The notes under the pieces are model-generated. The model did no database searches. It saw only the letters and a list, made by a program, of their open reading frames with translations, and was not told where the DNA came from. Shown here one piece after another: positions 42,763 to 64,000 of a stretch of 64,000 nucleotides of DNA. The position numbers and the translations under genes are program-made. Source of the stretch: Trichosphaerium sp. ATCC 40318 (taxonomy: Eukaryota; Protista; Tubulinea). Each line of letters begins with the position of its first letter. Positions within the stretch are counted from its first letter, which is position 1. The stretch is from positions 151,810 to 215,809 of the forward strand of contig JALMLS010000343.1 of assembly GCA_038496445.1 (NCBI GenBank). The letters run 5' to 3'.

Positions 42763-44543
42763 TTATTTCTCAACATGTAAACAAATTGGACAATGGCTAC
42801 AACAGTTAGAGAAAAACAAAAGCAAAGAAAGACTCTAAATTTTTTTGTAAAATCACATACTCTGAGCCTTGAATGAAAGGACGAATATAACTTTCTTTCA
42901 CTTTTGGCATTAATCTCTCAGACACAACAAAGTAGTCAAGACGCCAACCAATATTCTTTTTACGACAGCTGAACTTGTAGGTCCAGAAAGTGTAACAATT
43001 CAGCTCTTCTGGATTGAACTCTCTACAAAAAAAAACGTGTTAACAACTGTATTCTCAGTGGCTTTTTTATGTTACCTGTATGTATCTACAAATCCATCTT
43101 TTAGGAAAGAGTCGAAACTCTCACGTTCTTTATCAGTAAATCCAGAGGTTTTACGCTGTTTTGAGAAGAAAAAAATAAGAAAACAAATTCTAACTTAGAC
43201 TGAGTTTTTAACGTACGTTTGTTTTTGGATTGCAAATATCGAGTTCTAGACGGCCTACCTATTGTAACAAGTATTAGAATATATCATTCCCAATTAAACA
43301 ATATAATTGTAGTAAAATAAGGCATACATTGAGATCACCAGTCCATATAATTGGCTTTTTTTTATCGAGTTCTTTCAAATAAGCGAAAAAGTGCTTATCC
43401 CAATCAAGACGCTTTTCAAGGTTCTTTGGCCTTCAAAAATCACGTGTCAGTAACAAAGGGTAACACAAAAGAATTAACATTACCATCCCTTATCATCTCC
43501 TTCCTTGGATTTAGCACCTACAACAGTTTTAACAAGACATGAGAGTTGGCTGTATAATCGTACCAGAATTAGGAATATATGTGGCAATGAGATAGTAGGA
43601 CTCATATTCCGCTGTTATAGCCTTACGTCACCGCTTAGATATTTAAACAAAAAGAATGTTCTTACCCTTCCTTCGGTATCATGATCTGGCACACCCATAC
43701 CTTTAGTTACTTTGATGGGTTTCTCTTTTGAGAAAATCCTAAACATGGATTCAAAAAAAAATTCCAAGAAAAAAGTTAGTTTGTTTCCAAAGCTTACGCT
43801 GTCCCAGCATATCCAGCATTATAACTAACAAACAAGAAGTTAATACACTACCAATATATATATCTTATTAACGTACTTGCAGGAGTAAAAATAGCCTTCA
43901 TAACCTACAAAGTGACCTTTAACTTTTGCTTCTGAAATTGTTTTTTTTTTGTTGAAACTTACCGAGGTCTTTGAGGTAGTCTTTGTCCTTTGTTGTATCG
44001 ACTATCTTTGTTTCTCCAAGGCAAATTATATCAGGGTCTTCTTCTTCAATGTACTCTAAGCCGTTGTGAGAGGTTGGAGTGACAGTTTTGTACTGACCTT
44101 TAAAACCCTTCTTTTTGATAGCGTTCCAGCTTGCTACGTTCCACGATACGATTTTAAGCTCGCCACTGGGTTTTTGAGTAAGTTTAAGCAAAAAAATACA
44201 CAACTTGATAATAATGGTTTCAGGCGAATACCAGCGCGTAAAAAACACCACAAACGCAGTTTTTAGCGTTTGATGCGGGTTTTATTTTAAAAGGCGTACT
44301 CTCCTAATTCTGGTGTTGAGAAATCAGTCTCAGGTAATGGATCTGGGAATGGAGCAGGTTTCTACAAATATTTGAGCGAGTGTCAAAAAAAAAAAAGCAC
44401 ACGTACCTCATGGTCTTCGCCTGGGCGCTTTACACGCTTCTGTCTCTTCTTTGCTGGCGTTTTCTAAACAATGTTAGCAAGATTTGACAATCTTCGTTGA
44501 AAACGCGTTCTTTTTTTGCTGGTGCTGCTCTCTTCTTACTCAT
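42763..44543 (-). CDS. APEX1: AP endonuclease, ExoIII/APE1 family (multi-exon)
   Basis: Basic N-terminus, LKIVSWNV, EEEDPDIICLGETK, GYAGT, EGR, ATYIPNSG, GDLN, GWRLDYFVVS, GSD|HCPI. Confidence 0.93.
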
Positions 44544-44807
44544 TGTAGATAGTACTATAAGATGTGATGGTTTATTGCGCGCTTCTCCTAACTTGAACAA
44601 AAATAAAACAGCTGACTGAAAAAAAAAGCCCGCGAAAGTAAGCGGTGTTCAGTGATTGTGTTTCACGTCGACAACATTTTTTTAACGCCCAAATAGAAGA
44701 CCATTTAACAACACAAACGTACAACTTAAAATTTATGAGACAAAGGTAATTATAGGCTTTACAAAAAACCGCCTTTACAAAACAGGATTTTAAAAAAATC
44801 CTTTGAA

Positions 44808-47800
44808 TTATTTCTTTGGTCCAATGATGACCCTCTTACGGGCGTATTCGCCTTTTACTTCTTCTTCTCCACTTGATGAAGATGAGCTTGAAGATGATGA
44901 GCTTGATGAGCTTTCTTCGTCTTTATTATCGTCCAGTTCGTCTTTTCCTTTGAATTTGCTCTTGTTTAGAATTACTAACCATTTCTTTGTCCACTCTTCG
45001 TTTGGTGTTCCAAAGCGGTACCTACGTGTACAGATTAGAAAAAGAACACTGTAAGACTTGTATTTGAATTTCTTTCACAATAAAATCACGTTTTTATCCA
45101 CGTGGTTAACTACGTACTTTCGGCCCTTGTTTGTAATAACATAGAGGACATGTAGTTTCTCAATTTTAGTTCCTTTGACTTCTACTTTGTCCACAGGACC
45201 TGCTTCTCCACCAGTCAAATCGTAGTGACCGTATGGGCTCTTAGACTTAGCAGATTTGAATTTGTAGAGGATTCCGTTACGGTAAACCATCCTAAGAGGT
45301 CAACGATTAGAGAAATGTCGAAAAACTCATTCAAACTTTTGTTAAAATACGTACCACATCTTTTTGGTGTTGTAAGTCTTCTTCCTGTCATCACCACACT
45401 TGTGCATGTATCCGCAGTACTCACGTACTTTGGTTGTTGTAACACCGACCTTGTTGAGAACAAGGAAGTCTTGTACTTGTCGTGAATCGAGGAGCTCAGG
45501 AACTTTCATTACGTCTGATAACCTAGAATAGAAATCAACAAAAAGTCCTCACACCTTTTTTTTTAAAAGACGTACCAAACACCAAGTTTGGCTTGTCTCT
45601 TATCAGCATGGGCTGGTACTAGCGTACGACGCAATTTCTTTGATACGAGGCCTTTAGGTACTTTACCTTTAAACTGTGTCTTCAACTAAGAGAAAAAAAT
45701 CAGTAACTTTCTTGAATAGGTTTTGTTTTCTCTTTGAACGTACGGTATTGTTTAGGTTATTAAAGTGGTTATAACGACGATATACAACCCATCTTGTGTA
45801 TCTTAGATCAACCAAGATTTTAAAGACAGTGTATCGGCGACCCTTTCGTTTAAGTAACTCATTGTCTAAAATGAGAACTTCAAAGTCTCCTTCTACTTTT
45901 TGGATACCAGTAGATTCGCCGTCACTATCACGTGTTAGTAAAAAAAAATTCTATTTTATTCTTTTCTTTAATCTTGCTTACCCTTTCATTGAACTCAAGC
46001 GCCATAGCTTCTTATCGCGGGCAGTAGCCTTGCCAACGTTTGCTTTTCCGCTTGCTTTCAAGTTCATCTTTCCTTTGTGACCTTTTTTGCCTCCGTCAGA
46101 AGAAGAGCTAGAGCTTGAGTCATCAGAACTATCTCTTTCGCCCTTTCCTTTGACCTTTAGGTTCATCTTTGCAGAACCTTTGGCTTTAAAACCGCCCTAA
46201 AACGCAACAATCAATAAACAGAACAAAAAGTTTCCTCCTTTAGAATAAAAAACACCACAAAAATCGTACTTGAGCTTTACCGCCCTTCTTTCCGCCAATT
46301 TTGCCTCCGACAGAAATGCCCATTTTTCCGTGTCCTTTGGACTTTCCTTTGCCTAACAACGGAGTCAGTCTTTATTCTTGTTGGTTCGAAAAATAAACCC
46401 AAAATTGCCAACGTACTGTCTTTGCTTGACGAAGAGGATGACGACGATGATGAGCCAGAATCGGAAGTATCATCTGTACTATGTGTTCCTCTTCCTTTTC
46501 CTTTGACTTTCATGCCTCCAGAAACCTTTGGGCCCTTGGCTTTTCCAAAACCCATCTTGCCTCCTTTGCCTTTTCCTTTAACATCACCGCTTACTTTAAG
46601 ATCTCCACCGACTTTAGCTCCTTTGTGACCTTTTCCTTTACCGCTTAAGCCTAGTTTGAATCCACCGCCACCTGATTTCTTCTTGTGACCGCCTAAACAA
46701 CGATTAGAGACACGTGACATCCAAGATAAGAAAGAAATAAAAAAAAAGGTTCGTACCACCAGATGATGAGCTTCCAGAAGAAGATGACGATGAGGAAGAA
46801 CCGGAGTGAGATCCACTTCCTTTTACTTTACCGCCAAATCCGAATTTACCCTTAGGCTTATCGACTTTGACTTTAACGTCTCCGCCGACTTTGACATCAG
46901 CGTCAACGTCTACACCGCCTTTGGCTTTGACTTTCTTTCCCTTAGACTTTCCAAGAGATCCGAAACCGAATTTTCCTTTTGGTTTGTCGCCCTTGACTTT
47001 GACATCTCCGCCAACTTTAGGTCCTTTGACATCGACGTCAGCGCTTCCCTTGGATTTTCCTTGACCACTAAAGCCAAGCTTGAAACCAGCGCCGCCTGTT
47101 TTATTCTTTCCACCGCCACTAGAGCTGGACGATGAAGATGAGGATGTGCCAGAGTGAGATCCACTTCCTTTCACTTTTCCTCCAAAGCCAAATTTGCCTT
47201 TTGGTTTGTCGCCTTTGACTTTCACGTCACCGCCGACCTTTGGTCCCTTGGCTTTTGCGCTTCCTCCAAGTCCGAATCCAAAGCCACCTGACTTTTTCTT
47301 CTTGCCATCACCTGAAGATGAAGAGGATGATGAGGTTCCTGAGTGAGATCCTCCACCTTTTCCTTTTCCGCCGAAACCGAAGCCAAACTTGCCCTTTGGT
47401 TTATCACCTTTGACTTTGACATCTCCGCTGACTTTAACATCAACATCGACATCTCCGCCCTTGGCTTTACCTGAACCGAAACCGAATTTACCCTTTGGTT
47501 TGTCGCCCTTTACATTGACATCTCCGCCAACCTTGACATCACCGCCGACTTTTGGGCCTTTGGCTTTACCGCCGAAACCCATCTTGAAGCCGCCACCGGA
47601 TTTGCCTTTTCCTAAAATACTCTTAGACAACTACATAAGTCAAACAATTATCGTACCGTCACCAGAGCTAGAACTAGATGAAGAGGATGAAGAAGTGCCA
47701 GAGTGAGATCCACCTGCTTTTACTTTTCCTCCGAAACCGAATTTACCCTTTGGTTTATCACCCTTTACCTTGACGTCTCCGCCAACCTTTGGTCCTTTGG

Positions 47801-50800
47801 CTTTTGCGCTTCCTTTGAGACCGAATCCAAAGCCACCTGACTTTTTCTTCTTGCCATCACCAGAAGACGAAGATGAGGTTCCATCTCCGCCTCCTTTTCC
47901 TTTTCCGCCGAAGCCAAATCCAAATTTTCCTTTTGGCTTGTCGCCCTTGACTTTGACATCGCCACTGACTTTAGGTCCTTTGACGTCAACATCGAGATCA
48001 GCACCGCCTTTTGTTTTACCGCTGCCACCAAATCCAAATTTACCCTTTGGTTTGTCGCCCTTAACCTTGACGTCTCCACCGACCTTGACATCGCCACCGA
48101 CTTTAGGTCCTTTAGCTTTTCCGCCAAAGCCCATTTTGAAGCCTCCGCCGCCTGATTTCTTACCTGTGAATGTACAAGTTAATACAACGCTAACATCAGT
48201 AGATTATTTTCTACTACGTACCATCAGAGCTTGAAGAGGATGAAGATGATGAAGTGCCAGAGTGTGATCCGCCACCTTTTCCTTTACCACCAAAACCGAA
48301 ACCGAATTTTCCTTTTGGTTTGTCGCCTTTGACTTTGACATCTCCGCCGACTTTAGGTCCTTTGACATTAACATCGACATCAGCGCCGCCTTTGGTCTTT
48401 CCGCCGGCACCAAATCCGAAATTGCCCTTTGGCTTGTCACCCTTTACCTTGACGTCTCCGCCAACCTTTGGGCTCTTGCCTTTGGCACTTCCTTTGAGTC
48501 CAAATCCGAAGCCACCTGACTTTTTCTTCTTTCCATCACCGGATGAAGAGGATGAAGAAGAAGAACCGGAGTGAGATCCACCTCCTTTTCCTTTTCCTCC
48601 AAGTCCAAATCCGAACTTTCCTTTTGGCTTGTCGCCTTTGACTTTGACGTCTCCGCCGACTTTAGGTCCTTTGACGTCGATATCAACATCAGCACCGCCT
48701 TTTGTTTTACCGCTGCCACCAAATCCGAACTTTCCTTTTGGTTTGTCTCCTTTAACCTTGACGTCTCCGCCAACTTTAGGTCCTTTGGCTTTACCGCCGA
48801 AGCCCATTTTGAAGCCTCCGCCACCTGATTTCTTTTTACCTGAAAAGAAAGAATAAGATAAATAATATGTTAAAATAGTGATAACTTACCATCAGAGCTA
48901 GAGGATGAAGATGATGAAGTACCAGAGTGTGATCCTCCACCCTTTCCTTTTCCACCGAGACCGAATCCAAACTTGCCCTTTGGCTTGTCACCCTTGATCT
49001 TGACGTCACCGCCAACTTTAGGTCCTTTGACATCTACGTCAACATCAGCGCCGCCTTTAGTTTTACCGCCAGCGCCGAATCCGAATTTGCCCTTCGGTTT
49101 GTCGCCCTTGACTTTGACATCTCCGCCGACTTTAGGTCCCTTCGCTTTACCGCCGAAACCCATTTTGAAGCCGCCTCCAGATTTGCCTTTTCCTAAAACA
49201 ACGAAAAAGGTAAGATAAAGCTAGACATACTGAACAAGGTTAGTATGAGCCACGTACCGTCACCAGAGCTGGAACTAGATGATGAGGATGTGCCAGAGTG
49301 AGATCCACCTCCTTTTCCTTTGCCACCGAAGCCAAATCCAAATTTACCCTTTGGTTTGTCTCCTTTGACTTTCACGTCTCCGCCAACTTTTGGTCCTTTG
49401 ACGTCGATATCTACATCTGCGCCGCCTTTGGTCTTTCCGCCAGCGCCAAATCCGAATTTTCCTTTTGGTTTATCGCCCTTAACCTTTACGTCACCGCCGA
49501 CTTTGACATCGCCACCGACTTTAGGTCCTTTGGCTTTGCCTCCGAAACCCATTTTGAAGCCTCCGCCGCCTGATTTCTTTTTACCTTAAAAGAACAAGTT
49601 AGCAACAATAAACTCAGAACCTAAACTTACCATCAGAGCTTGAGGAGGAAGACGAAGAGGATGAACCAGAGTGAGATCCGCCACCCTTTCCTTTGCCACC
49701 AAGACCGAAGCCAAATTTGCCTTTAGGTTTATCACCTTTTACCTTGACATCACCGCCGACTTTAGGGCCTTTGACATCAATGTCAACATCAGCGCCGCCT
49801 TTAGTTTTACCGCCGGCACCGAAACCGAATTTACCCTTTGGCTTGTCACCTTTGACTTTGACATCACCGCCGACCTTTGGGCTCTTGCCTTTGGCGCTTC
49901 CTTTGAGACCGAATCCAAAGCCGCCTGACTTTTTCTTCTTTCCATCGCCTGAAGATGACGACGAAGAAGAGGAACCGGAGTGAGATCCACCTCCTTTTCC
50001 TTTTCCGCCAAGTCCAAATCCGAATTTGCCCTTAGGTTTGTCGCCCTTGACTTTGACGTCACCGCCAACTTTAGGGCCTTTGACATCAATGTCAACGTCA
50101 GCACCGCCTTTAGTTTTACCGCCAGCGCCGAAACCGAATTTACCTTTTGGTTTGTCACCTTTGACTTTTACGTCTCCGCCGACCTTTGGTCCTTTAGCTT
50201 TTCCGCCAAAGCCCATTTTGAAGCCTCCGCCGCCTGATTTCTTTTTACCTGAGAACAAACAAGTCAGCACAATACAAACTGAAAAAGATAAGTGTTGTTT
50301 TTTGTTTACCATCAGAGCTGGAGGATGAAGATGAGGAAGTGCCAGAGTGAGATCCACTTCCTTTTACTTTTCCTTTGCCACCGAGTCCGAAACCGAACTT
50401 TCCTTTTGGCTTATCACCCTTGACTTTGACATCTCCACCGACTTTAGGGCCTTTAATATCAACATCAACATCAGCGCCACCTTTGGTTTTACCGCCGAAA
50501 CCGAATTTACCCTTTGGCTTGTCGCCCTTTACCTTGACGTCACCGCCAACCTTTGGTCCTTTGGCTTTTGCGCTTCCTTTGAGACCGAATCCAAAGCCGC
50601 CTGACTTTTTCTTCTTTCCATCACCTGATGAAGAAGAAGATGAAGAAGAGGAACCGGAGTGAGATCCACCACCTTTTCCTTTTCCACCAAGTCCAAATCC
50701 GAATTTGCCTTTTGGCTTGTCGCCTTTGACTTTGACGTCTCCGCCAACTTTAGGTCCTTTGACATTAACATCGAGATCAGCGCCGCCTTTTGTTTTACCG

Positions 50801-53800
50801 CTGCCACCGAATCCGAATTTGCCTTTTGGTTTGTCGCCTTTGACTTTAACATCACCGCCGACTTTTGGGCCTTTAGCTTTTCCGCCAAAGCCCATTTTGA
50901 ATCCGCCGCCGCCTGATTTCTTTTTACCTACAAAAAAAGATTAGAATAATACAACAAGGAAGAAACTTATTGTACCATCAGAGCTTGAGGATGATGAAGA
51001 CGAAGAGGAACCAGAGTGAGATCCACCTCCTTTTCCTTTACCACCAAGACCGAATCCAAATTTGCCTTTAGGCTTGTCACCTTTGACTTTGATATCACCG
51101 CCAACTTTTGGGCCTTTGACGTCAACATCAACATCAGCACCGCCTTTGGTCTTTCCGCCAGCACCGAATCCGAATTTGCCCTTTGGTTTGTCACCTTTGA
51201 CTTTTACGTCTCCGCCGACCTTTGGACCTTTAGCTTTACCGCCAAAGCCCATTTTGAAGCCTCCGCCGCCTGATTTCTTACCTAATAGAATAAGTTAATA
51301 AAGCAAACAAAGTTATGAAGCATCCGTACCATCAGAGCTAGACGAAGAAGATGATGAAGTGCCAGAGTGAGATCCGCCACCTTTTCCTTTACCGCCAAAA
51401 CCGAAACCGAATTTTCCTTTTGGTTTGTCGCCTTTCACCTTGACGTCTCCGCCAACCTTTACATCACCGCCAACCTTAGGTCCCTTAATGTCAACATCGA
51501 CATCAGCGCCACCTTTGGTCTTGCCACCGGCACCAAATCCGAATTTGCCCTTTGGCTTGTCGCCTTTGACTTTGACGTCTCCGCCAACCTTTGGTCCTTT
51601 GGCTTTTCCGCCGAAACCCATTTTGAAGCCTCCGCCGCCTGATTTCTTTTTACCTGAGAACAAACAAGTCAGCACAATACAAAACGAAAAAGGTAAGTGT
51701 TGTTTTTTGTTTACCATCAGAGCTGGACGATGAAGATGAGGAAGAACCAGAGTGAGATCCACTTCCTTTTACTTTTCCTTTGCCACCGAGTCCGAAACCG
51801 AACTTTCCTTTTGGCTTATCACCTTTGACTTTGACATCTCCGCCGACTTGAGGTCCTTTAATATCGACGTCTACATCAGCGCCACCTTTGGTTTTGCCGC
51901 CAGCGCCGAAACCGAATTTACCCTTTGGCTTGTCGCCCTTTACCTTGACGTCTCCGCCAACCTTTGGTCCTTTGGCTTTTGCGCTTCCTTTGAGTCCGAA
52001 TCCAAAGCCACCTGACTTTTTCTTCTTTCCATCACCTGATGAAGAAGATGATGAAGAAGAGGAACCGGAGTGAGATCCACCTCCTTTTCCTTTACCGCCA
52101 AGTCCGAAACCGAATTTTCCTTTTGGTTTGTCGCCTTTGACTTTGACATCTCCGCCAACCTTTGGTCCTTTGACATTAACATCGAGATCAGCGCCGCCTT
52201 TTGTTTTGCCGCTGCCACCGAATCCGAATTTGCCTTTTGGTTTGTCGCCTTTGACTTTAACATCTCCACCGACCTTTGGGCCTTTAGCTTTTCCACCAAA
52301 GCCCATCTTGAATCCGCCTCCGCCTGATTTCTTTTTGCCTATTGTTTAAATAATAAGTACCTTGTATCACTAAAATTAAACAATTTACGTACCATCACCA
52401 GAGCTAGAGGAAGAAGATGATGAAGTGCCAGAGTGAGATCCGCCACCTTTTCCTTTACCGCCAAGTCCGAAACCGAATTTGCCTTTTGGTTTGTCTCCTT
52501 TTACTTTGACGTCTCCGCCAACCTTTGGTCCTTTGACATCAATATCGACATCAGCGCCGCCTTTGGTTTTACCGCCAGCACCGAATCCAAATTTACCCTT
52601 TGGTTTGTCGCCTTTGACCTTGACGTCACCACCGACTTTAGGTCCTTTGGCTTTGCCTCCGAAACCCATTTTGAAGCCTCCGCCGCCTGATTTCTTTTTA
52701 CCTACAAAGAACAAGTTAGCATCAATAGGTTTAGAAATCAAATTACCATCAGAGCTTGACGAGGACGATGAAGAAGAGCCAGAGTGAGATCCACCTCCTT
52801 TGCCTTTACCGCCGAGACCAAAACCGAATTTACCCTTTGGTTTGTCGCCCTTGACTTTGACGTCTCCACCGACTTTAGGTCCTTTAATATCAACATCAAC
52901 ATCAGCGCCACCCTTGGTTTTACCGCCGAATCCGAATTTACCCTTTGGCTTATCACCCTTAACTTTGACGTCACCGCCAACCTTTGGGCTCTTGCCTTTG
53001 GCACTTCCTTTGAGTCCGAATCCAAAGCCGCCTGACTTTTTCTTCTTTCCATCGCCTGATGAAGAGGATGAAGAAGAGGAACCGGAGTGAGATCCACCTC
53101 CTTTTCCCTTACCGCCAAGTCCGAAACCGAACTTGCCTTTTGGCTTGTCGCCTTTAACCTTGACGTCACCACCAACTTTAGGTCCTTTAATGTCGACATC
53201 AACATCAGCACCGCCTTTAGTTTTACCGCCAGCACCGAATCCGAATTTGCCCTTTGGTTTATCACCTTTGACCTTTACGTCGCCCTCGACTTTAGGTCCT
53301 TTGGCTTTACCACCAAATCCAAGTTTAAAACCTGCGCCGCCTGACTTTTTCTTTCCTAAAAACAGCAATTAGACATGTCAATGAATGACCAAAAATTAAT
53401 AAGAAAAAAACTTACCGTCACCGCTAGAAGAGGATGAAGATGACGAGGAAGAACCAGAGTGTGATCCACCTCCTTTTCCTTTTCCGCCAAGTCCAAATCC
53501 GAATTTACCTTTTGGCTTATCGACTTTGACTCCTCCACTAACTTTAGCGCCTTTTCTGCTTGAACCCAAGTTGAATCCTCCAGAGTTGCCCTTTTTACCC
53601 TTAGCAACAACTCCTTTTTCAAATGAAGCATCAGCGTCAACATCAACGCCACCCTTGGCTTTACCGCTGCCGCCGAAACCAAATTTTCCCTTTGGTTTAT
53701 CAACCTTTATTTTAACGTCTCCTTCAGCTTTAGGTCCTTTAGCTTTACCACCGAATCCAAGTTTGAATCCAGCGCCTCCAGATTTCTTTCCTGTTAAAAG

Positions 53801-56800
53801 AAGAGTTAGTCACAGAGTTGATGGTTGTGTACGGGATAAAGAGGTATACGTACCGTCACCAGAGCTTGAGGAAGAAGAGGATGATGAAGAGGAACCAGAG
53901 TGTGATCCACCTCCTTTGCCTTTACCACCGAGACCAAAACCGAACTTGCCTTTAGGCTTATCGCCTTTCACTTTAACATCTCCACCGACTTTAGGGCCTT
54001 TGATATCGACGTCTACATCAGCGCCGCCTTTTGTTTTACCGCCAGCACCGAATCCGAATTTGCCTTTAGGCTTGTCACCTTTGACTTTGACATCTCCGCC
54101 GACTTTTGGGCTCTTGCCTTTGGCGCTGCCTTTGAGACCGAATCCAAAGCCGCCTGACTTTTTCTTCTTTCCATCACCTGAAGATGACGACGAAGAAGAG
54201 GAACCGGAGTGAGATCCTCCGCCCTTGCCTTTACCGCCGAAACCGAAACCAAATTTGCCCTTTGGTTTGTCGCCTTTGACTTTGACATCTCCACTGACTT
54301 TAGGTCCTTTGATATCAACATCTACATCAGCACCGCCTTTGGTCTTACCGCCAGCGCCGAATCCGAATTTGCCTTTTGGTTTATCTGCATTGCCTTTAGC
54401 TTCAGCTCTACCGCGGCCTTTGAACTTGGCATCTCCGCCAACGTTTACATCACCTCCAATCTTAGGACCTTTAGCTTTACCGCCAAAACCTAATTTGAAG
54501 CCTGCACCGCCTGATTTCTTTTTACCTGTTGGAAAACAGGAATTAGAACAGAGTCACGTGTAAAAAAATAAGTTACTTACCATCACCAGAGGAAGAAGAT
54601 GAAGACGAGGAAGAAGATCCAGAGTGAGATCCTTTTCCTTTTCCTTTACCGCCAAGTCCGAAACCGAACTTGCCTTTAGGTTTGTCGCCTTTGACTTTGA
54701 CGTCTCCACCGACTTTAGGGCCTTTAATGTCGACATCTACATCAGCACCGCCTTTGGTCTTTCCGCCAGCACCGAAACCAAATTTACCTTTTGGTTTATC
54801 ACCTTTGACTTTTACGTCGCCGCCAACTTTAGGTCCTTTAGCTTTACCGCCGAAACCCATTTTGAATCCGCCTCCGCCTGATTTTTTACCTACAATAATC
54901 AATAGATTGAGCAAATATTAGCATTATTACTTACCATCAGAGCTTGAAGAGGAAGATGATGAAGTGCCAGAGTGAGATCCACTTCCTTTTACTTTTCCTT
55001 TACCACCGAGTCCGAAACCGAACTTTCCTTTTGGTTTATCACCCTTTACTTTGACGTCTCCGCCAACCTTAGGTCCCTTAATGTCAACATCGACATCAGC
55101 GCCACCTTTGGTCTTGCCACCGGCTCCAAATCCGAATTTTCCCTTTGGTTTATCGCCTTTGACCTTGACGTCTCCGCCAACTTTAGGTCCTTTGGCTTTG
55201 CCTCCAAAGCCCATTTTGAAGCCTCCGCCGCCTGATTTCTTTTTACCTACAATTAAAGGGTAAGAATAATTTCTTAGTTAGTAAGGTCTCAGTCACATAC
55301 CGTCACCAGAACTGGAAGAGGAAGATGAAGAAGAGGAACCAGAATGAGATCCACCTCCTTTTCCTTTGCCACCAAGACCGAATCCGAATTTGCCTTTAGG
55401 TTTGTCTCCCTTGACCTTGACGTCTCCGCCAACCTTTGGTCCTTTGACGTCAATATCGACATCAGCACCGCCTTTGGTTTTACCGCCAGCACCGAATCCG
55501 AATTTACCCTTAGGCTTATCAACTTTAGCTCCGCCGCTGACTTTTACGTCACCGCCAACTTTAGGTCCTTTGGCTTTTCCACCAAAGCCCATCTTGAAGC
55601 CTCCGCCGCCTGATTTTTTACCTAATACAATTAAATAAATATTTAATAAATAACAAAGAGGAGCCTTACCATCAGAACTGGATGAGGAAGATGAAGTGCC
55701 AGAGTGCGATCCGCCACCCTTTCCTTTTCCACCAAAACCGAAACCGAATTTTCCTTTTGGTTTGTCACCTTTTACCTTGACGTCTCCGCCAACCTTTGGT
55801 CCTTTGATATCGACATCAACGTCAGCACCGCCTTTGGTCTTTCCGCCGGCACCGAATCCGAATTTGCCCTTTGGCTTGTCACCTTTGACTTTGACGTCTC
55901 CACCGACTTTAGGTCCTTTGGCTTTACCGCCGAAACCCATTTTGAAGCCTCCGCCACCTGATTTCTTTTTACCTACAATTAAAAGTTAGGAAACAGAAAA
56001 ATAAGTTTAGAGCCAAAACCTACCATCAGAGCTGGATGAAGAAGATGATGAAGAACCAGAGTGAGATCCACTTCCTTTTACTTTTCCTTTACCACCGAGT
56101 CCAAAACCGAACTTTCCTTTTGGCTTATCACCTTTGACTTTGACATCTCCGCCGACTTTAGGTCCTTTGATATCGACATCAACATCAGCACCACCTTTGG
56201 TTTTACCGCCAGCGCCGAATCCGAATTTGCCCTTTGGCTTATCGCCTTTGACCTTGACGTCTCCGCCAACCTTTGGTCCTTTGGCTTTTGCGCTGCCTTT
56301 GAGACCGAATCCAAAGCCACCTGACTTTTTCTTCTTTCCATCACCGGATGAAGAAGAGGATGAGGAAGAAGATCCAGAGTGTGATCCACCTCCTTTACCT
56401 TTACCGCCAAGTCCAAATCCGAATTTTCCCTTTGGTTTGTCGCCCTTTACTTTGACGTCACCGCCAATCTTTGGTCCCTTTACATTGACGTCAACGTCAG
56501 CGCCGCCTTTAGTCTTGCCGCCAGCACCAAAACCAAATTTTCCCTTCGGTTTGTCGCCCTTGACTTTGACATCACCGCCGACTTTAGGTCCCTTCGCTTT
56601 ACCGCCGAAACCCATTTTGAAGCCGCCTCCAGATTTGCCTTTTCCTAAAATACTCTTAGATAACTACATAAGTCAAACAATTATCGTACCGTCACCAGAG
56701 CTGGAACTAGAAGATGATGAACCAGAGTGTGATCCACCGCCTTTACCTTTGCCACCGAAGCCAAATCCAAATTTACCTTTTGGTTTGTCTCCTTTGACTT

Positions 56801-59800
56801 TGACGTCTCCGCCAACTTTAGGTCCTTTAATATCGACATCTACGTCAGCGCCGCCTTTGGTCTTGCCGCCAGCGCCAAATCCAAATTTGCCCTTTGGTTT
56901 ATCAGCCTTTACATTGACGTCACCGCCAACTTTAGGTCCTTTGGCTTTTCCGCCGAAGCCCATCTTGAATCCGCCACCACCTGATTTCTTACCTAATGCA
57001 AATCTGAGACGAAGAACTTATGAAAGTATATACTTACCATCAGAGCTTGAAGAGGATGATGAGGAGGTGCCAGAGTGAGATCCGCCACCTTTGCCTTTTC
57101 CGCCGAAACCAAAACCGAATTTGCCTTTTGGCTTGTCGCCTTTGACTTTCACGTCTCCACCAACTTTAGGTCCTTTGATGTCGACATCTACGTCAGCGCC
57201 GCCTTTGGTTTTACCTCCGGCACCGAATCCGAATTTGCCCTTTGGCTTGTCTACTTTGGCTCCGCCACCGACTTTAACATCAACATCAGCACCGCCTTTG
57301 GCTTTACCTCCGAATCCAAACTTGCCCTTTGGCTTATCACCTTTGACCTTTACGTCGCCCTCGACCTTTGGTCCTTTGGCTTTACCACCAAATCCAAGTT
57401 TGAAACCGGCGCCACCTGACTTCTTCTTTCCTAAAGAACAATCAGACAAGCCAAAGATAACATTCAAAAAGAAAAGGAAATGTATATTAGCCACGTACCA
57501 TCACCGCTGGACGAAGATGAAGACGAGGAAGAGGAAGAACCAGAGTGTGATCCTCCACCTTTACCTTTGCCGCCGAAGCCGAATCCAAATTTGCCCTTTG
57601 GTTTGTCGCCTTTTACTTTGACATCACCGCCGACTTTAGGTCCTTTGATGTCGACGTCTACGTCAGCACCGCCTTTTGTTTTACCGCCAGCGCCGAATCC
57701 GAACTTCCCTTTTGGTTTATCTACGTTTGCGCTTCCGCCGACTTTGACGTCTACATCAGCACCGCCTTTGGTCTTTCCGCCAGCACCGAATCCGAATTTG
57801 CCTTTAGGCTTATCACCTTTGACTTTTACGTCGCCACCAACTTTAGGTCCTTTGGCTTTACCTCCAAAACCCATTTTGAAGCCTCCACCACCTGATTTCT
57901 TTCCTATATAAAGCGTGAGACTAAGAACAAAGGGGATAGTAAATACATACCATCAGAACTGGAAGAAGATGACGAAGAAGAGGAACCAGAGTGAGATCCG
58001 CCACCTTTTCCTTTGCCGCCGAAACCGAATCCGAACTTGCCTTTTGGCTTATCGACTTTAGCGCCTCCACCGACTTTGACATCGACATCTGCGCCGCCTT
58101 TGGTCTTGCCACCAGCACCAAACCCAAATTTCCCTTTTGGTTGGTCTACTTTGACGTCTCCACCGGCTTTACCGCTGCCACCGAAGCCGAACTTGCCCTT
58201 TGGTTTGTCGCCTTTAACCTTTACGTCGCCCTCGACTTTAGGTCCTTTGGCCTTTCCACCAAACCCAAGTTTAAATCCAGCGCCGCCTGACTTTTTAGAT
58301 CCTAAACGTTTGGGTTAGCTATTGTTCAACCTCTTCATAAATATAATTCAAACTTACCATCACCGCTAGAAGAGGATGAAGATGAGGAAGAAGATCCAGA
58401 GTGAGATCCACCACCTTTTCCTTTGCCGCCGAAACCAAAACCGAATTTGCCTTTTGGCTTGTCGCCTTTGACTTTGACGTCTCCACCAACTTTAGGTCCT
58501 TTGATGTCGACATCTACGTCAGCACCGCCTTTGGTTTTGCCGCCAGCACCGAATCCGAATTTGCCCTTTGGCTTGTCTACTTTGGCTCCGCCACCGACTT
58601 TGACATCAACATCAGCGCCGCCTTTGGCTTTACCTCCGAATCCGAATTTGCCCTTTGGTTTATCAGCCTTTACATTGACGTCACCGCCAACTTTAGGTCC
58701 TTTAGCTTTACCACCGAATCCCATCTTGAAGCCACCTCCGCCTGATTTCTTTTTACCTGAAAACAAAGAATAAGAAAACGTAAATGCTGACATAATATTC
58801 TTGATAACGTACCGTCACCAGAGCTTGAGGAGGACGAAGAGGAAGAGCCAGAGTGGGAGCCCTTTCCTTTACCTCCAAAACCGAAACCAAATTTACCTTT
58901 AGGCTTGTCACCCTTGACTTTGACATCACCGCCGACTTTAGGTCCTTTAATATCGACGTCTACATCAGCACCGCCTTTTGTTTTACCGCCAGCGCCGAAT
59001 CCGAACTTGCCTTTTGGCTTATCGACTTTAGCGCCTCCACCGACTTTGACATCGACATCTGCGCCTCCTTTGGTCTTGCCGCCAGCACCAAACCCAAATT
59101 TCCCTTTTGGTTGGTCTACCTTGGCTCCACCACTACTTTAACATCGCCGCCAGCTTTTCCACCGCCAGAACCGAATCCGCCAAATCCAAACTTTCCTTTT
59201 GGTTTGTCGACTTTAGCTCCGCCGCTTACTTTGACGTCTCCACCAGCTTTAGGTCCTTTGGCCTTTCCTCCAAAACCCATTTTGAAGCCTCCGCCACCTG
59301 ATTTCTTTTTACCTTAAACAACCAAGTTAGTTTTGGTGTAAAACAGATCGTTACAATACAACGACTTGAGTACTTACCGCTACCGCTACCGCTAGAAGAC
59401 GATGAGGATGAGGATGAGGAAGATGATGAACCAGAGTGAGATCCACCTCCTTTTCCTTTACCACCTAAACCGAATCCAAATTTACCTTTTGGTTTGTCAC
59501 CTTTTACCTTGACGTCTCCGCCAACTTTTGTCTTTCCGCTAGATCCGAAACCAAACTTTCCTTTTGGTTTGTCTACATTAGCGCCACCGCCAACTTTGAC
59601 ATCGACATCTGCGCCGCCTTTGGTCTTGCCACCAGCACCAAACCCAAATTTCCCTTTTGGTTGGTCTACCTTGGCTCCACCACTTACTTTAACATCGCCG
59701 CCAGCTTTTCCGCTGCCACCGAATCCACCGCCGAAACCAAACTTTCCTTTTGGCTTATCGACTTTAGCGCCACCGCCAACTTTGACGTCGACATCAGCGC

Positions 59801-61534
59801 CGCCTTTGGTTTTACCGCCGGCGCCGAATCCAAATTTACCCTTTGGTTTATCAGCCTTGACGTCTCCGCCAGCTTTCGCTTTGGCACCAAAGTTCAACTT
59901 GAATCCGCCTTCGCCAGATTTCTTTTTACCTGAAAACTTGTCAGCAAAAAAACACGTGGTATTTTCTTTACTACGAAAAAAGGTAATTTCTATCTAAAAA
60001 TGTACCTTCGCTTGACGAGGATGAAGAGGATGACTTTGAGCCACTTGCTTTACTCTTCTTAGCTCCAAAGCCAAATTTTGCTGAAATGTTTCCTTTTGGT
60101 TGTGAGCCTCCTCGTCCGTAGAACGCTTTTGTACCAATGCCAATATCAGCGCTCTTTTTAGGTCTGTGGCCCTTCTTTTTGCCACCGCCAACCTTGAATA
60201 CAAGTAAGATCGTGAAGAATAGAAAAGAAATCTTTCAAAAAGGAAAAACCACAAAAACAAAACAAAAAAAAAAAAAAAAAGATCAATCTTCGTACCGATA
60301 CACCTCCTGAACCACCTGTGCGGAATTGTGCAGGAACTTCGGAGAATTTTATAGCTAAACGAGATTATGTGAGTATTTGAAGTATAGTTAACGCTTAACT
60401 GGGATTCGAAATCTAAAATTAAACCGAATTTCTTTTTGATCTTTTTTTTATGGTTTTGGATCACAAAAAATCAAAAATGAAAAAAAACTCCAGCGTACCT
60501 GGTTGGCCTGTCTCGTAGGCAAATATAGATAGTTTAAATTCAATTACTCGCTTTATATCGTCATCGGACTCTATCTTTACAAGCTTTCTAGTGCCGTTTA
60601 CCTAAGTTAAAACATGAGTAAATTTCCATCGTTTAGAAAAAAAAAGATATCGATTCTGTTTAGAAAACCTCAACTACAAGACACTCACCGACCAAAAGTA
60701 GTAAATATATCGCTTGAATTTGTATCCTGGTATTAATTTTATAGAACGCCATACTTCTTCGAGAGTAACAAAGGCTTTAAGAGTAATCTCTCCTGTACTA
60801 TTACCTCGTCGAACGTCTAAAAAAAAACGATAAGCGACCAACAACACAAAAAAAAAAACCTTCAAAAAACTTGAAAAAATACTGCAGTATTCCTAGCTCC
60901 TACAAAACCCTTTTCGTAAAATAATCACGTGGTCGTTTTTACATTATCACGTGATTGTTATTTTTTAGATTAAATAACCAGATACGCGCTTTGGTTGTTT
61001 TCACAAGAAAATAGGTAACGTACATTCGTGTGGTTTTGCCGAAGCGCCTCCGCTTACTTTTGCGCTAAAAAAAGTGAGTTTAATGGCGTTTGATAAGATA
61101 AATGACGTATAAAAGATTAGTTCACATACCTAGCGCTACCGCCGTGGAACTCTTTGGCTCCGAATTTATATCCAGTTTGTACTTTTACGCCGTGTTTCGC
61201 TTTACCTTCACCGAGCAAGTCAAAAAACGGTTTTTTAAACGAAAAGTACTGTACCTGAGCCCTTCTTACTTCCATGTCCCTTCTTATGATGGCTACCGCT
61301 GTCCGACCCTGAGGAGGACGACGAAGAAGAGGACGAGGAAGATGATGAAGAGGAGGAGGACGAGGACGATGAGGACGATGAAGAGGATGAAGAAGACTTC
61401 TAAAAAAAATAAGCGATAGTGAGCTATCTAAAAAATTCCGGCTAACGGCAGTGTACGGTAATAGTACAACGCCTATTTTTTGTATCTTTATCTCGTATAC
61501 ATAATGTACGTACCTTCTTCTTTTTACCAAACAT
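44808..61534 (-). CDS. Giant multi-exon protein: poly-Ser, PB1-like domain, AHNAK-like Gly/Lys repeats, PX domain, PH domain
   Basis: Start MFGKKKK|KSSSS... at 61534. PB1-like exons at 60499-60816 (TLEEVWRSIK...LVKIESDDDIKRVIE). About 27 repeat exons. PX at about 45470-45900 (YTVFKILV..RWVVYRRYNHFNNL...KRQAKL...VQDFL). PH at about 44960-45430 (YCGYMHKCG...WMVYRNGILYKFK...YRFGT..EWTKKWL). Stop at 44808. Confidence 0.85.
46277..60193 (-). repeat. Coding tandem repeat array (KGPKVGGDVKVKGDKPKGKFGFG / GGADVDVD / GGSHSGSSSS units) organised as duplicated exons
   Basis: Dozens of near-identical peptide units with mostly synonymous nucleotide variation, separated by short (about 45-70 bp) introns. 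Confidence 0.97.
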
Positions 61535-62347
61535 CGACGTGCTTCGCCCTTGGGAACAACTGTTTTTATAAATGTGCTTTCAAACAAAAAAAGTGTCTAA
61601 AAATCGCGAGAATTCATACACTTTTTGTGCACTCAATAGTAACGCAAATGCAATGAAATAAATACGTTCAAACCGCTTTCAGGAGTTCTTGTGCATTTAT
61701 TTTTGACGTAGTGTCAAAAGTTGAATTTTCATTGTGTTTTTTGATAGAGCGATAATTTTGGGCTGAAAGGCTAGTTGGCGCTGTTTATCTGTTTCACCAT
61801 ACACACCGCTTTTCAATTTGGCCTTCGTAGCTCTTATTAGCGTCAGCGTATTCTCTGCATTTGGAGAAAATTATTCTCTGTGTTGACACAAGTACACCAC
61901 TAAGACCCGATGTAACGCAGTTGTGTTCATGTACCTTTTTTCTAAAAACAACTTTTGGTTCTTTCTGTTTCACAATTGTGCTCCTATAAGGCTAATAGTG
62001 CCGCTTCAACATTCACACACACGCTTCGGGTGCGTGGAATGGGTTTATAACTGTTTTCGGAACTAGTGAGAACACCTCACTTTTGTAAATAACGTTATAC
62101 GCGCATACACATAGACCTACAAGCGTATCACTGCTGCGTTCAACATTGTGTCGCAATTCCATCACAAATAACAGCTAGCGGTACCCATTACCACCGGGTA
62201 ACCCTGGAACGCATTAAACACGTGTAGAAATGAAGTCACCCCAAAAAACTCAAACAATCCAAAAAAAAAAATTTAGCTTTGAAACAACACGTGGCACCAA
62301 ACGTCACTTTAACAGATACAACGCTCTTTATTTCTTTACATACACTC

Positions 62348-63391
62348 TTATACGTCTTTTATGTACTGAGCATACTCTTCCTTGTGCTCTTCACTCCACC
62401 TAGCAAGCGGTGGTCTTCTCTTGATAATGTCGTCTGCAGTCCATTGAATACACTTGTTGAACTTTTCGTTAGACATTTCAGCATCAGGACAAATCACATA
62501 AAACTGGTTTGTCTCATTAGCATTTATAGCCTCAACCAACATGTCCACAACTTGGCTTGGCATCCACGCGCCAGGGTGTGGCTTGTCCTCAGAGAAAGGA
62601 ACATTCTTAGCATCAAACTTTTCGCCAGCCTTACGCCTTATCTCCTTTAAGGCAATACTCGTATTAACCCATCCGGGAACGAGCAAAAGAGCACGGACTT
62701 TGCATCCTGGAGTAGTACGCAGTGTATGCTGTAACCCCTCAGTCACAACTTTAACTCCTGCCTTTGATACGTTGTAAGCGCAATCTCCTGGGGGAACGTG
62801 ATGCCCTGTTTGGATCCTGTATTGACAATAACTGCTTCAGTGCCTTGGTCGATCATGGCCTTGTTTGAAAGAGTCAGCTTTGAGAGAAGTCGTAAAAGAA
62901 GAAAAATTGTAGATTGCGGACAAATTGTTTTTAGCGTACTCACCTTGGAGAATACCTGTACGCCATATATTACACCGAATAGGTTAACTTGGAGGACTTT
63001 ATGCCATCTTTCAAGGTTTTCGGTTGGAGCTAGAGTTTAAAGTTATGAAACAACCATGAAGTGGTTTTTCTCTACGTGGGGTACCTCCTCCGCCGACTAT
63101 TCCAGCGTTGTTGAATAAAAAGTCAACTTTGCTCCATTTGGTGTAAACAGTATCTTTCAATGCCTGGACGCTCTCAAGCACAGAAACATCTGTAATTGAG
63201 CTTATAACGTCGTTTGAATCTGCAGCTAACGTCTTGACCTTCTCGATTGCTGTTTTCAATCCGCTTTCGTCGATATCGGCCATACACACCTTCATGCCTT
63301 GTTTGGCGCAGTACTTGGCTGTAGCCAGACCAATACCAGATGATGCGCCTGTAATAACAGCAACGTTTCCTTTAGATAGCACGCTTGTCAT
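62348..63391 (-). CDS. Short-chain dehydrogenase/reductase (SDR), with an apparent 1-nt frameshift at 62790-62794
   Basis: TGASSGIG, FNNAGI, VNLFG, VNTGSKQGIT, YNVSK catalytic motif, LLVPGWVNT. Confidence 0.9.
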
Positions 63392-64000
63392 TTCCGTGTA
63401 GAAGGGAGTAAATTGGTTTCAAACTGAAAACAACTTTTCGCCGGTTGTTAAGGAGGCGTGTACATAGTTCACAAGGTACGTATTCGCTCCGACACCCAAC
63501 AAAAACACCCATGAGAGTACACATGTTAAATTAAGCGCCAAAAACCTCAAAAGCGTAACACTGCGTTCTCAGATTTTATCAACATTTTATCACGTTTTCG
63601 ACTGATTCCATACTTTTTTTCATGTAGAGTCGCTGTTATTTTTCTAATTGTAGTGTTGTAATTGCTGATCTACATTCACTTTGGAACTCTGGGATCACGA
63701 AAACCGAACCTGCAGACCAATACTTACAACATTGTAAAACCAACAAAATTGATTTAAAACGTGGAAGCACCAGCGCTTCCAAACGTCAAAACATGTTTAT
63801 ATTATAGTAGAACAATAATCAGCAAGGCTACTGAGTTTGTAAACACTTAAAATCAGGCACGTAAAACAATGCAGATAGGTAAAAAATGATAGAGATGGTT
63901 TTTTTATAAACGTGTATTTGTATTAGTACATTAATAATAACAGCCAAAGCCCTATCTTAAATTGAACCTTTGGGCGACGCCCTCAATGTATTTATCAGTT

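Follow-up and report, generated by a model that had tools for sequence, protein, structure and literature searches.

Introduction

Phospholipase D carries PX and PH domains in tandem, the PX domains of SGK3 and SNX16 bind phosphatidylinositol 3-phosphate (PI3P) and are endosomal, and PX and PB1 domains are found together in p40phox and Bem1. In the tandem PX–PH module of Bem3, a Cdc42 GTPase-activating protein of yeast, the two putative lipid-binding faces share one orientation, and both could bind to a single membrane (PMC5931145). The giant protein AHNAK is divided into 251 + 4,392 + 1,000 aa, its centre consisting of 39 units, mostly of 128 aa, which are built of a 7-residue motif with a central proline and alternating residues; the gene has no introns, no relative but periaxin is known, and a beta-strand, “polyionic rod” model has been proposed for it (PMC2196192). 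Giant scaffolds of the AHNAK type are poorly understood, partly since they are known from one lineage only. Here we describe a gene on the minus strand of a 64,000-nt stretch of DNA from Trichosphaerium sp. ATCC 40318 (GenBank assembly GCA_038496445.1, contig JALMLS010000343.1, forward-strand positions 151,810 to 215,809; hereafter the window, in whose coordinates positions are given). On balance, we read this locus as a single expressed gene for a protein of ~452 kDa, in which a disordered polycationic repeat of ~36 modules is joined to a PX–PH phosphoinositide membrane anchor.

One reading frame across 42 exons

Between 46 and 60 kb, the window has a GC content of 0.46–0.48 (surroundings ~0.38) with a GC skew of ~-0.24, and is packed with short minus-strand open reading frames (ORFs) that all translate to the same kind of Gly/Lys/Ser-rich peptide. 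An exon model was built from a three-frame reading of the minus strand by a greedy spliced-ORF walk, followed by manual correction. The hand-corrected model joins 42 exons, from 61534 to 44808, into one reading frame, and the short ORFs thus belong to one gene whose ends fall exactly where the original prediction had placed them: a start ATG at 61534, which a stop in the same frame precedes by 17 codons, and a stop codon TAA at 44810–44808. All 41 introns are GT–AG, measure 45–207 nt (median 58) and keep the frame throughout. Donors of the type GTA[AC]GT were seen in many introns and a CTAAC-like branch site close to the acceptor in several; two introns, of 45 and 48 nt, read through in frame if left unspliced.

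The product has 4,671 aa, close to the ~4,500 aa first estimated, with a mass of 452 kDa and a pI of 10.3. It is laid out as 253 aa of N-terminal sequence, 4,136 aa of repeat (~4,000 had been expected) and 282 aa of C-terminal sequence. Its composition is dominated by Gly (28.7%), Lys (21.1%) and Ser (12.7%), with Val at 8%, Asp at 7% and Phe at 5.8%; Lys and Arg together number 1,021 against 365 Asp and Glu, a net charge of ~+650. No hydrophobic signal-like or membrane-spanning stretch was found by eye in the N- and C-terminal sequence. The features of the gene are collected in Table 1.

Transcripts and the exon 10 frame break

Contigs from public runs were placed on 58700–61650, which covers the N-terminal end and a break of frame in exon 10. 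A 915-nt contig of run X6, which differs in 1 letter over the pieces listed, runs from exon 1 into repeat exon 9, and a 660-nt contig of run X1, which differs in none, has its joints at predicted exon borders. The N-terminal part and the array therefore lie on one RNA. Introns E2/E3, E3/E4, E4/E5, E5/E6, E6/E7, E8/E9 and E10/E11 were confirmed base for base: the joints in the 915-nt and 660-nt contigs skip 49, 65, 207, 87, 144 and 76 nt, and the E10/E11 intron (56 nt) is shown by a further X6 contig. By contig position, 61 nt separate exons 6 and 8, consistent with an exon 7 of 59 nt, and 301 nt precede exon 5, into which exons 1–4 (283 nt) fit with a short leader. RNA depth was 0 beyond 61570. 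A start of exon 7 at 60412 was also considered and rejected, as its phase clashes with exon 8 and the RNA contigs show the 144-nt intron instead.

At the other end of the gene, 11 public runs hold 0.46–0.56 of the sampled 31-mers of 44700–46800 (0.54–0.56 in the RNA-type runs), where 0.58–0.63 would be expected of fully spliced mRNA. This suggests that exons 35–42 are all expressed and their introns removed. We infer continuity through the 13-kb middle into the PX–PH exons from the reading frame, intron phase, this share of words in the RNA runs and the gene of a relative described below.

Among runs X1–X20, the C-terminal exons (44700–46800) occurred under at least 8 coded organism labels and in marine and other metatranscriptomes; the organism is either widespread or a companion or contaminant of other cultures. 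Introns of the same interval were present in none of these runs.

Exon 10 has 500 nt, whereas all the other repeat exons have lengths divisible by 3. Comparison of its GTAGTGG with GTAAGTGG at the paralogous place in exon 9 indicates that one A has been lost near 59134, which is the only frame interruption in the gene and is carried as an X in the protein model. A contig of run X7 on 59038–59197 has one extra T behind 59133 (plus strand), by which the frame is restored, and differs in one other letter; the X6 contig without differences stops exactly at 59134. Either the assembly is in error here or the break is an allele. Concealment of the frameshift by a 97-nt intron was considered and discarded, as the phases of such an intron do not match.

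If the frameshift were real, the gene would make a product of ~500 aa or be decaying, and there would be no giant protein; the same would hold if the three parts were separate transcription units. In favour of this are the one-base deletion in exon 10 of the window and the absence of any contig covering a 14-kb mRNA among those placed on 58700–61650. Against this, the public contig has the frame-restoring base, and exons past the break are expressed and spliced, as seen in the E10/E11 joint and the C-terminal exon word share. A decaying gene could not show the low ratio of nonsynonymous to synonymous substitution rates (dN/dS), ~0.04, of the modules that lie downstream of the break. Introns of 45–76 nt leave no space for internal promoters between the parts, and in the relative L001 a single exon, 44 nt away from a repeat exon, holds both linker and PX. 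Skipping of exon 10 would also keep the frame, because the exon sits between phase-1 introns. We therefore consider it improbable that no giant protein is made.

The repeat array

The repeat array covers residues 254–4389 and comprises ~36 modules of ~102 aa, with autocorrelation peaks at 102–104 and at 38 residues and a composition of 31% Gly and 22% Lys. Each module consists of Gly/Lys-rich sub-repeats (...GGDVKVKGDKPKGKFGFG...) and closes with GSHSG and 8–11 Ser, then (G)D; a typical one reads GKKKSGGGGFKMGFGGKAKGPKVGGDVKVKGDKPKGKFGFG / AGGKTKGGADVDVDIKGPKVGGDVKVKGDKPKGKFGFG / LGGKGKGGGSHSGSSSSSSSSS(G)D. A second module type begins GKKKKSGGFGFGLKGSAK and follows the first type without an intron in two-module exons, so that one or two modules make up each symmetric phase-1 exon. 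The motif KFGFG was counted 79 times, DKPKGKFGFG 75 times and GSHSG 35 times, and there are 40 poly-Ser tracts of at least 6 residues. The repeat core DVDIKGPKVGGDVKV, picked out before any search was made, is present in the array, along with 16 copies of DVDIKGP and 46 of KGPKVGGDVKV. Several Pfam matches were set aside: Coa1 (PF08695) on the repeat stretch 52393–53353 of the minus strand scored above its cut-off (E = 2e-5), with a three-piece match in Gly/Lys/poly-Ser sequence that looks like a low-complexity artefact, and single-exon matches such as IMUP, FAM104 and SR-25 are artefacts of the same kind.

The modules are ~95% identical as protein, with synonymous sites largely scrambled. At the DNA level, repeat units are 70–94% identical, and Tandem Repeats Finder reported 73–82% matches at a period of ~309–363 nt. 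Since the units share only 70–94% of their DNA, the array can be assembled and has undergone no recent expansion. Across ten canonical exons of ~100 aa, the median proportions of nonsynonymous and synonymous differences (pN and pS) were 0.045 and 0.58, with dN of 0.046, dS of 1.13 and dN/dS of ~0.04. Where residues were identical, 0.58 of pairs had the same codon, 0.44 being expected of random draws from the gene's own usage; codon use has thus gone about three quarters of the distance to saturation. Strong selection acts on the modules' amino-acid sequence, beyond mere composition. The conservation of the peptide across such divergent DNA reflects either old duplications or selection against identical DNA repeats.

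Two intron pairs of the array (56645–56689/47612–47656 and 51654–51714/50249–50309) are 98% and 95% identical, other intron pairs reaching at most 76%, and exons 25 and 28 are 94% identical in DNA. These near-identical introns and exons point to at least one younger block duplication in an otherwise old array.

When the structure of a two-module exon, aligned with six sister exons, was predicted by AlphaFold2, it had a mean predicted local distance difference test (pLDDT) score of 43 and a predicted template modelling (pTM) score of 0.11 without secondary structure; coming from seven near-identical rows, the low pLDDT is no proof of disorder. An ordered repeat would instead have alternating V/K and D/V beta strands stacked into a rod or fibre, acting as a rigid spacer or a cytoskeleton-like polymer. 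The strict alternation in DVDVDIKGPKVGGDVKVKGD is in keeping with such strands, a dN/dS of ~0.04, rarely seen in disordered linkers, is more what one expects of structured repeats, and the beta-strand model of AHNAK offers a precedent (PMC2196192). The predicted structure contained no strands, however, and 31% Gly, 22% Lys and a charge of ~+650 disfavour compaction without a counter-ion or partner. An ordered array is thus unlikely in our view, and we proceed with the disordered repeat.

The PX domain, a probable PH domain and their relatives

The linker at the end of the array (...KATARDKKLWRLSSMK) leads into a PX domain. Its first exon piece (exon 38, 60 aa) matched solved PX structures of SGK3 (6edx, E = 1.1e-5; 1xtn, E = 2.4e-5) and SNX16 (5gw0, E = 1.3e-3) in the PDB. 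With single exons, Pfam PX (PF00787; cut-off 21.6 bits) gave 14.1 bits for the window, 19.7 for the metagenome locus L001 and 21.9 for L002. The motif RRYNHF, which fits R-[RK]-[YF]-x-x-[FL], and the motifs VPKGLVSKK and DKRQAKLGVWL downstream are present in the spliced sequence and kept in L001 and L002; we take them to correspond to PI3P-contacting elements of other PX domains, which include a Pro/Lys loop and a helix Arg. Judged from sequence, the PX domain is confirmed, and the motif RRYxxF by which it had been recognized lies, as RRYNHF, within the stretch that matches SGK3 and SNX16.

Directly after the PX domain, as had been proposed, follows a probable PH domain. The stretch EYCGYMHKCG...KKMWMVYRNGILYKFKS...PYGHYDL...LHVLYVITNKGRKYRFGTPNEEWTKKWLVIL shows the classical PH pattern by eye, and the Trp of the C-terminal helix in EEWTKKWL aligns with that of ADMERWMKAF in L001, with the strand pattern again read by eye. 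An orthologous 62-aa piece of L001 matched Pfam PH (PF00169) with 18.8 bits (E = 0.0024, profile positions 68–102 of 105), under the cut-off of 25.1; its sole PDB match was the PH domain of beta-spectrin (1btn, E = 0.46). Among the Atlas neighbours of exon 41, 36 of 100 were PF00169 clusters and the other family-bearing sets shown were PH variants, with scores of at most 0.86. The window pieces alone gave no match to Pfam PH, and a profile of three orthologous pieces returned only noise from the PDB. Every match obtained is thus to PH and every one lies below threshold; we consider a PH domain very probably present.

A search of 1.84 billion representatives with the PX exon gave five matches, of which two were plausible relatives (61% and 48% identity), none full length; both are ORF fragments from one Joint Genome Institute (JGI) metagenome. 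When the C-terminus of L001, a metagenome contig, was spliced by hand, it aligned with the window over 253 aa at 44.7% identity (E = 1.7e-67), with three intron positions shared, one gained and two absent. Upstream lies a repeat exon ending ...GSADVDVKVGGGASGDVKVKGGGGGKAKFGFGGKKKSHGGSSSSSSSSSSSSGDEQ(G), of the KFGFG/poly-Ser kind and with a phase-1 end, 44 nt before the exon that holds the linker and the start of PX. The linker TARDKKLWRLS is conserved and contiguous with PX in P0001/L001, and the protein ends in poly-Ser and RRRIVIGK, comparable to the window's RKRVIIGPKK. The junction of repeat, linker, PX and PH is therefore conserved in another organism.

A more distant PX–PH gene, with a PX exon 48% identical, was found at 1352–2070 of L002 (metagenome contig Ga0316160_117978). 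Its PH strands beta-1 to beta-3 are unsplit by an intron that is present in the window and L001, and the 1.35 kb upstream of its PX contains no Gly/Lys repeats, holding instead a Pro-rich 207-aa ORF and a Lys/Arg-rich exon. Further searches were negative: of the 95 pattern matches to a PX-exon profile in a metagenome scan, none was confirmed; a degenerate DNA pattern spanning the junction of exons 40 and 41, which would detect intron-less or cDNA copies, gave six chance matches only; and a word-based search with the start of exon 9 found no protein. A literature search returned no paper with these repeat motifs, and neither the protein collections nor the papers searched yielded a described orthologue.

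The N-terminal region

Residues 1–253 comprise MFGKKKKK followed by exactly 29 Ser, in agreement with the MFGKKKK and about 29 Ser first read from the DNA, then Gly/Lys/His stretches, a non-repetitive segment of ~97 aa and a first repeat-like exon (exon 8), which joins the N-terminal part to the array. The non-repetitive segment had been described as PB1-like. This assignment found no support: the exon 5 and exon 6 pieces, of only 42 and 34 aa, gave no match to PB1 (PF00564) or to anything else in Pfam (E ≤ 10), the PDB or the Atlas, and a word-based protein search with the exon 5 stretch found no relative. By eye, YYFWSVNGTRKLVKIESDDDI has the spacing of the OPCA motif of type A PB1 domains without the first acidic cluster, and a Lys, the residue conserved in beta-1 of type B PB1 domains, is present in ITLKAFV; this is a resemblance only. 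The N-terminal single-exon pieces also gave no PDZ match in Pfam or in the PDB, which includes periaxin/AHNAK2 PDZ entries (PMC5567927).

Comparison of the repeat with AHNAK

The original prediction had left it open whether the repeat is homologous or convergent with AHNAK. A true, distant homologue of AHNAK, AHNAK2 and periaxin would share with them an ancestral heptad repeat, with exchanged terminal domains (PX–PH here, PDZ there). The heptad [DE]-h-x-h-K-[AG]-P, which fits the AHNAK motif (PMC2196192), occurs 30 times in the 4,136 aa of repeat, about once per module, against 0.02 in shuffled sequences, and the two layouts are alike (251 + 4,392 + 1,000 against 253 + 4,136 + 282 aa). In a language-model search of the Atlas, the nearest clusters were AHNAK fragments, at ranks 1, 2 and 4, with scores of 0.62–0.67 that lie below the level often reached by shuffles. 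Dehydrins were also among the Atlas neighbours of the repeat.

When a 207-aa repeat exon was compared with the 8,000 best word-sharing candidates (proteins of 114–362 aa), no AHNAK-like protein was found at E ≤ 1. Its only match was weak (E = 3.3e-3), to P0006, a 131-aa metagenome fragment (JGI+NCBI sample 3300059473). This fragment, VEVKAPKVDVDVKEPKAKGGIDIHAPKIGFGLGGKKHSGSSSSSSSSDSDGKKKK, has runs of AHNAK-style heptads (VEVKAPKVDVDVKEPK...IDIHAPK) before a module end of the window type, GFGLGGKKHSGSSSSSSSS, and may be a remoter member of the family, of use as a bridge in the question of AHNAK kinship. Against homology, the repeat exons compared with Pfam matched no family that is listed for the AHNAK clusters, and the N-terminal pieces gave no PDZ signal. 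The heptads make up only ~5% of the repeat and Gly makes up 31%, and KFGFG and poly-Ser are foreign to the AHNAK repeat as described (PMC2196192). The array is spread over 27 exons where AHNAK is intronless, and short periodic low-complexity motifs converge easily. With no significant sequence match and a likeness in style and layout only, homology with AHNAK is not shown, and we judge it to be quite unlikely.

Neighboring genes

The ends of the giant gene are well bounded, because it is flanked by other minus-strand genes (Table 1). The gene resembling AP endonucleases begins only ~270 nt past the giant gene's stop, and the genome is compact. Rfam and tRNA scans of the window found nothing.

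Table 1. Features of the giant repeat gene and its surroundings (positions in the window).
Feature	Positions	Strand	Remarks
Whole gene	44808..61534	-	42 exons; coding sequence 14,015 nt as it stands in the window and 14,016 nt once the missing base is restored; 4,671 aa
Exon 1	61514..61534	-	encodes MFGKKKK; X6 RNA contig reaches 61514–61546
Exon 2	61255..61399	-	Lys and 29 Ser, then Gly/Lys/His; phase-1 end; 49-nt intron to exon 3 confirmed by X1 and X6
Exons 5–7	60296..60816	-	60816–60689, 60601–60499, 60354–60296; compact segment of ~97 aa, residues 95–191; 87- and 144-nt introns confirmed by RNA
Exon 8	60006..60192	-	first repeat-like exon (KFGFG, poly-Ser, phase-1 end); 76-nt intron to exon 9 in X6 contig
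Repeat array, exons 9–35	46417..59929	-	27 consecutive phase-1/phase-1 exons of 276–855 nt, lengths multiples of 3 except exon 10
One-base deletion, exon 10	59133..59134	-	GTAGTGG against GTAAGTGG in exon 9; breaks the frame
Exons 36–37	45982..46352	-	degenerate Gly/Lys and Ser/Asp stretches and linker
PX domain	45450..45924	-	exons 38, 39 and first part of 40; RRYNHF, VPKGLVSKK, DKRQAKLGVWL
Probable PH domain	44961..45431	-	end of exon 40, exon 41, start of exon 42
C-terminal tail	44808..44960	-	acidic stretch, 16 Ser, basic end RKRVIIGPKK, stop codon
SDR-like gene	63014–63418	-	short-chain dehydrogenase-like exon, VITGASSGIG; upstream of the giant gene
Exonuclease III/AP-endonuclease-like gene	43922–44648	-	MSKKRAAPAKK start at ~44540, continues into IVSWNV exon

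Discussion

The arrangement of a predicted unstructured repeat before a PX–PH pair suggests how the protein might work. The pair would bind phosphoinositides, most likely PI3P through the PX domain, whose sequence seems to retain the PI3P-contacting residues of other PX domains. By analogy with Bem3, where the lipid faces point the same way (PMC5931145), PX and PH may bind lipid jointly. The C-terminus could then be pinned to an endosomal, phagosomal or vacuolar membrane, from which the repeat would extend as a long, strongly cationic chain without fixed structure. The 79 KFGFG motifs and ~36 poly-Ser tracts may provide weak cohesive contacts and many possible phosphorylation sites, so that the chain might act as a brush, a coat or a condensate with a charge that Ser phosphorylation would modulate. 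The N-terminal segment might bind a partner and so dock the free end. Of the membrane-anchored disordered scaffold first proposed, the anchor and the disorder stand as the best available reading, given a confirmed PX domain and a repeat predicted to be unstructured; the PB1 domain found no support, and kinship with AHNAK is not shown.

Several observations weigh against this reading. The PH domain lies below every curated threshold, and the disorder of the repeat is predicted from near-identical sequences. The window sequence itself carries the exon 10 frameshift. No contig placed on 58700–61650 spans the 13-kb array or the junction from repeat to PX, and within the array short-read contigs hop between repeat copies. 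Docking by the N-terminal segment, for which the searches gave no fold, is a guess.

The net positive charge and the Lys-rich stretches would also suit nucleic-acid binding. The main ligand might then be a nucleic acid or another polyanion, in the nucleus or on RNA granules, with PX–PH regulatory and not an anchor. A pI of 10.3, 21% Lys and KKKS/KKKK stretches resembling nuclear-targeting sequences would agree with this, as would Gly/Phe-rich motifs similar in style to RNA-binding low-complexity regions. PX domains as a family, however, are membrane phosphoinositide binders, and no RNA- or DNA-binding domain was found by Pfam in any piece. We see little likelihood of a nucleic-acid ligand as the main one, and keep to the membrane-anchored scaffold.

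Going further, the modules may constitute a hitherto undescribed kind of sequence-specific, membrane-tethered polymer that forms a phospho-switchable coat or condensate on PI3P membranes and whose length is tuned by exon skipping, a possibility that we put forward tentatively and with more doubt than belief. Phosphorylation of the poly-Ser tracts could flip the net charge from ~+650 to negative. A still more daring version would trace this family and AHNAK back to a common ancestor older than the animals. The symmetric phase-1 exon layout makes isoform length directly testable by long-read RNA sequencing.

The locus would offer an independent, or very distant, example of a giant repeat scaffold with a clean modular design. 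Its repeat looks like low-complexity sequence and is predicted to be unstructured, yet the exact sequence is under strong purifying selection. This bears on what is selected in “disordered” repeats, for which charge pattern, Phe–Gly contacts and phosphorylation sites are candidates; the module types and a relative at 45% identity are natural variants with which such selection could be studied.

The protein falls into the size class of AHNAK, AHNAK2 and periaxin and is laid out in three parts as they are, with repeats of over 4,000 aa between a short N-terminal region and a C-terminus of unique sequence. It also has in common with them heptads of the K-[AG]-P-K-V and D-V-D-V type, in which hydrophobic and charged residues alternate. 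AHNAK associates with membranes (PMC2196192), as is proposed here from the predicted PX–PH pair. The repeat units differ: AHNAK has a 128-aa unit made of heptads throughout, whereas the module here has ~102 aa and one heptad, is rich in Gly (31%), and contains KFGFG and poly-Ser, which are not in the AHNAK repeat as described (PMC2196192). The AHNAK repeat is encoded without introns (PMC2196192) and the present one by 27 exons; the PX–PH end is absent from AHNAK, and no PDZ domain was detected here.

Bem3 and phospholipase D have, like this protein, a PX domain directly followed by PH. In both, the module stands beside a catalytic domain (RhoGAP and PLD, respectively), whereas here it is C-terminal to a repeat with no catalytic domain, and the exon pieces gave no sequence match to either protein. 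SGK3 (CISK) and SNX16, the best matches of the first PX exon, are a kinase and a sorting nexin of ordinary size, and the likeness is limited to the PX fold. p40phox and Bem1 would be precedents for a PX and PB1 pairing if the N-terminal segment were a PB1 domain, which is unsupported here; they differ in having SH3 domains and no giant repeat. FG-repeat nucleoporins and other cohesive low-complexity proteins resemble the array in having many Phe–Gly motifs in a long region predicted to be unstructured; they differ from its KFGFG motifs, strongly basic spacers, poly-Ser punctuation and lipid-binding-type ends, and no homology to them was detected. The domain combination had at first been thought unfamiliar as a whole, which holds for a PX–PH pair at the end of a 4,100-aa repeat and not for the tandem itself. 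Tandem PX–PH modules and giant repeat scaffolds are each known; their union, the module and its pattern of selection are new.

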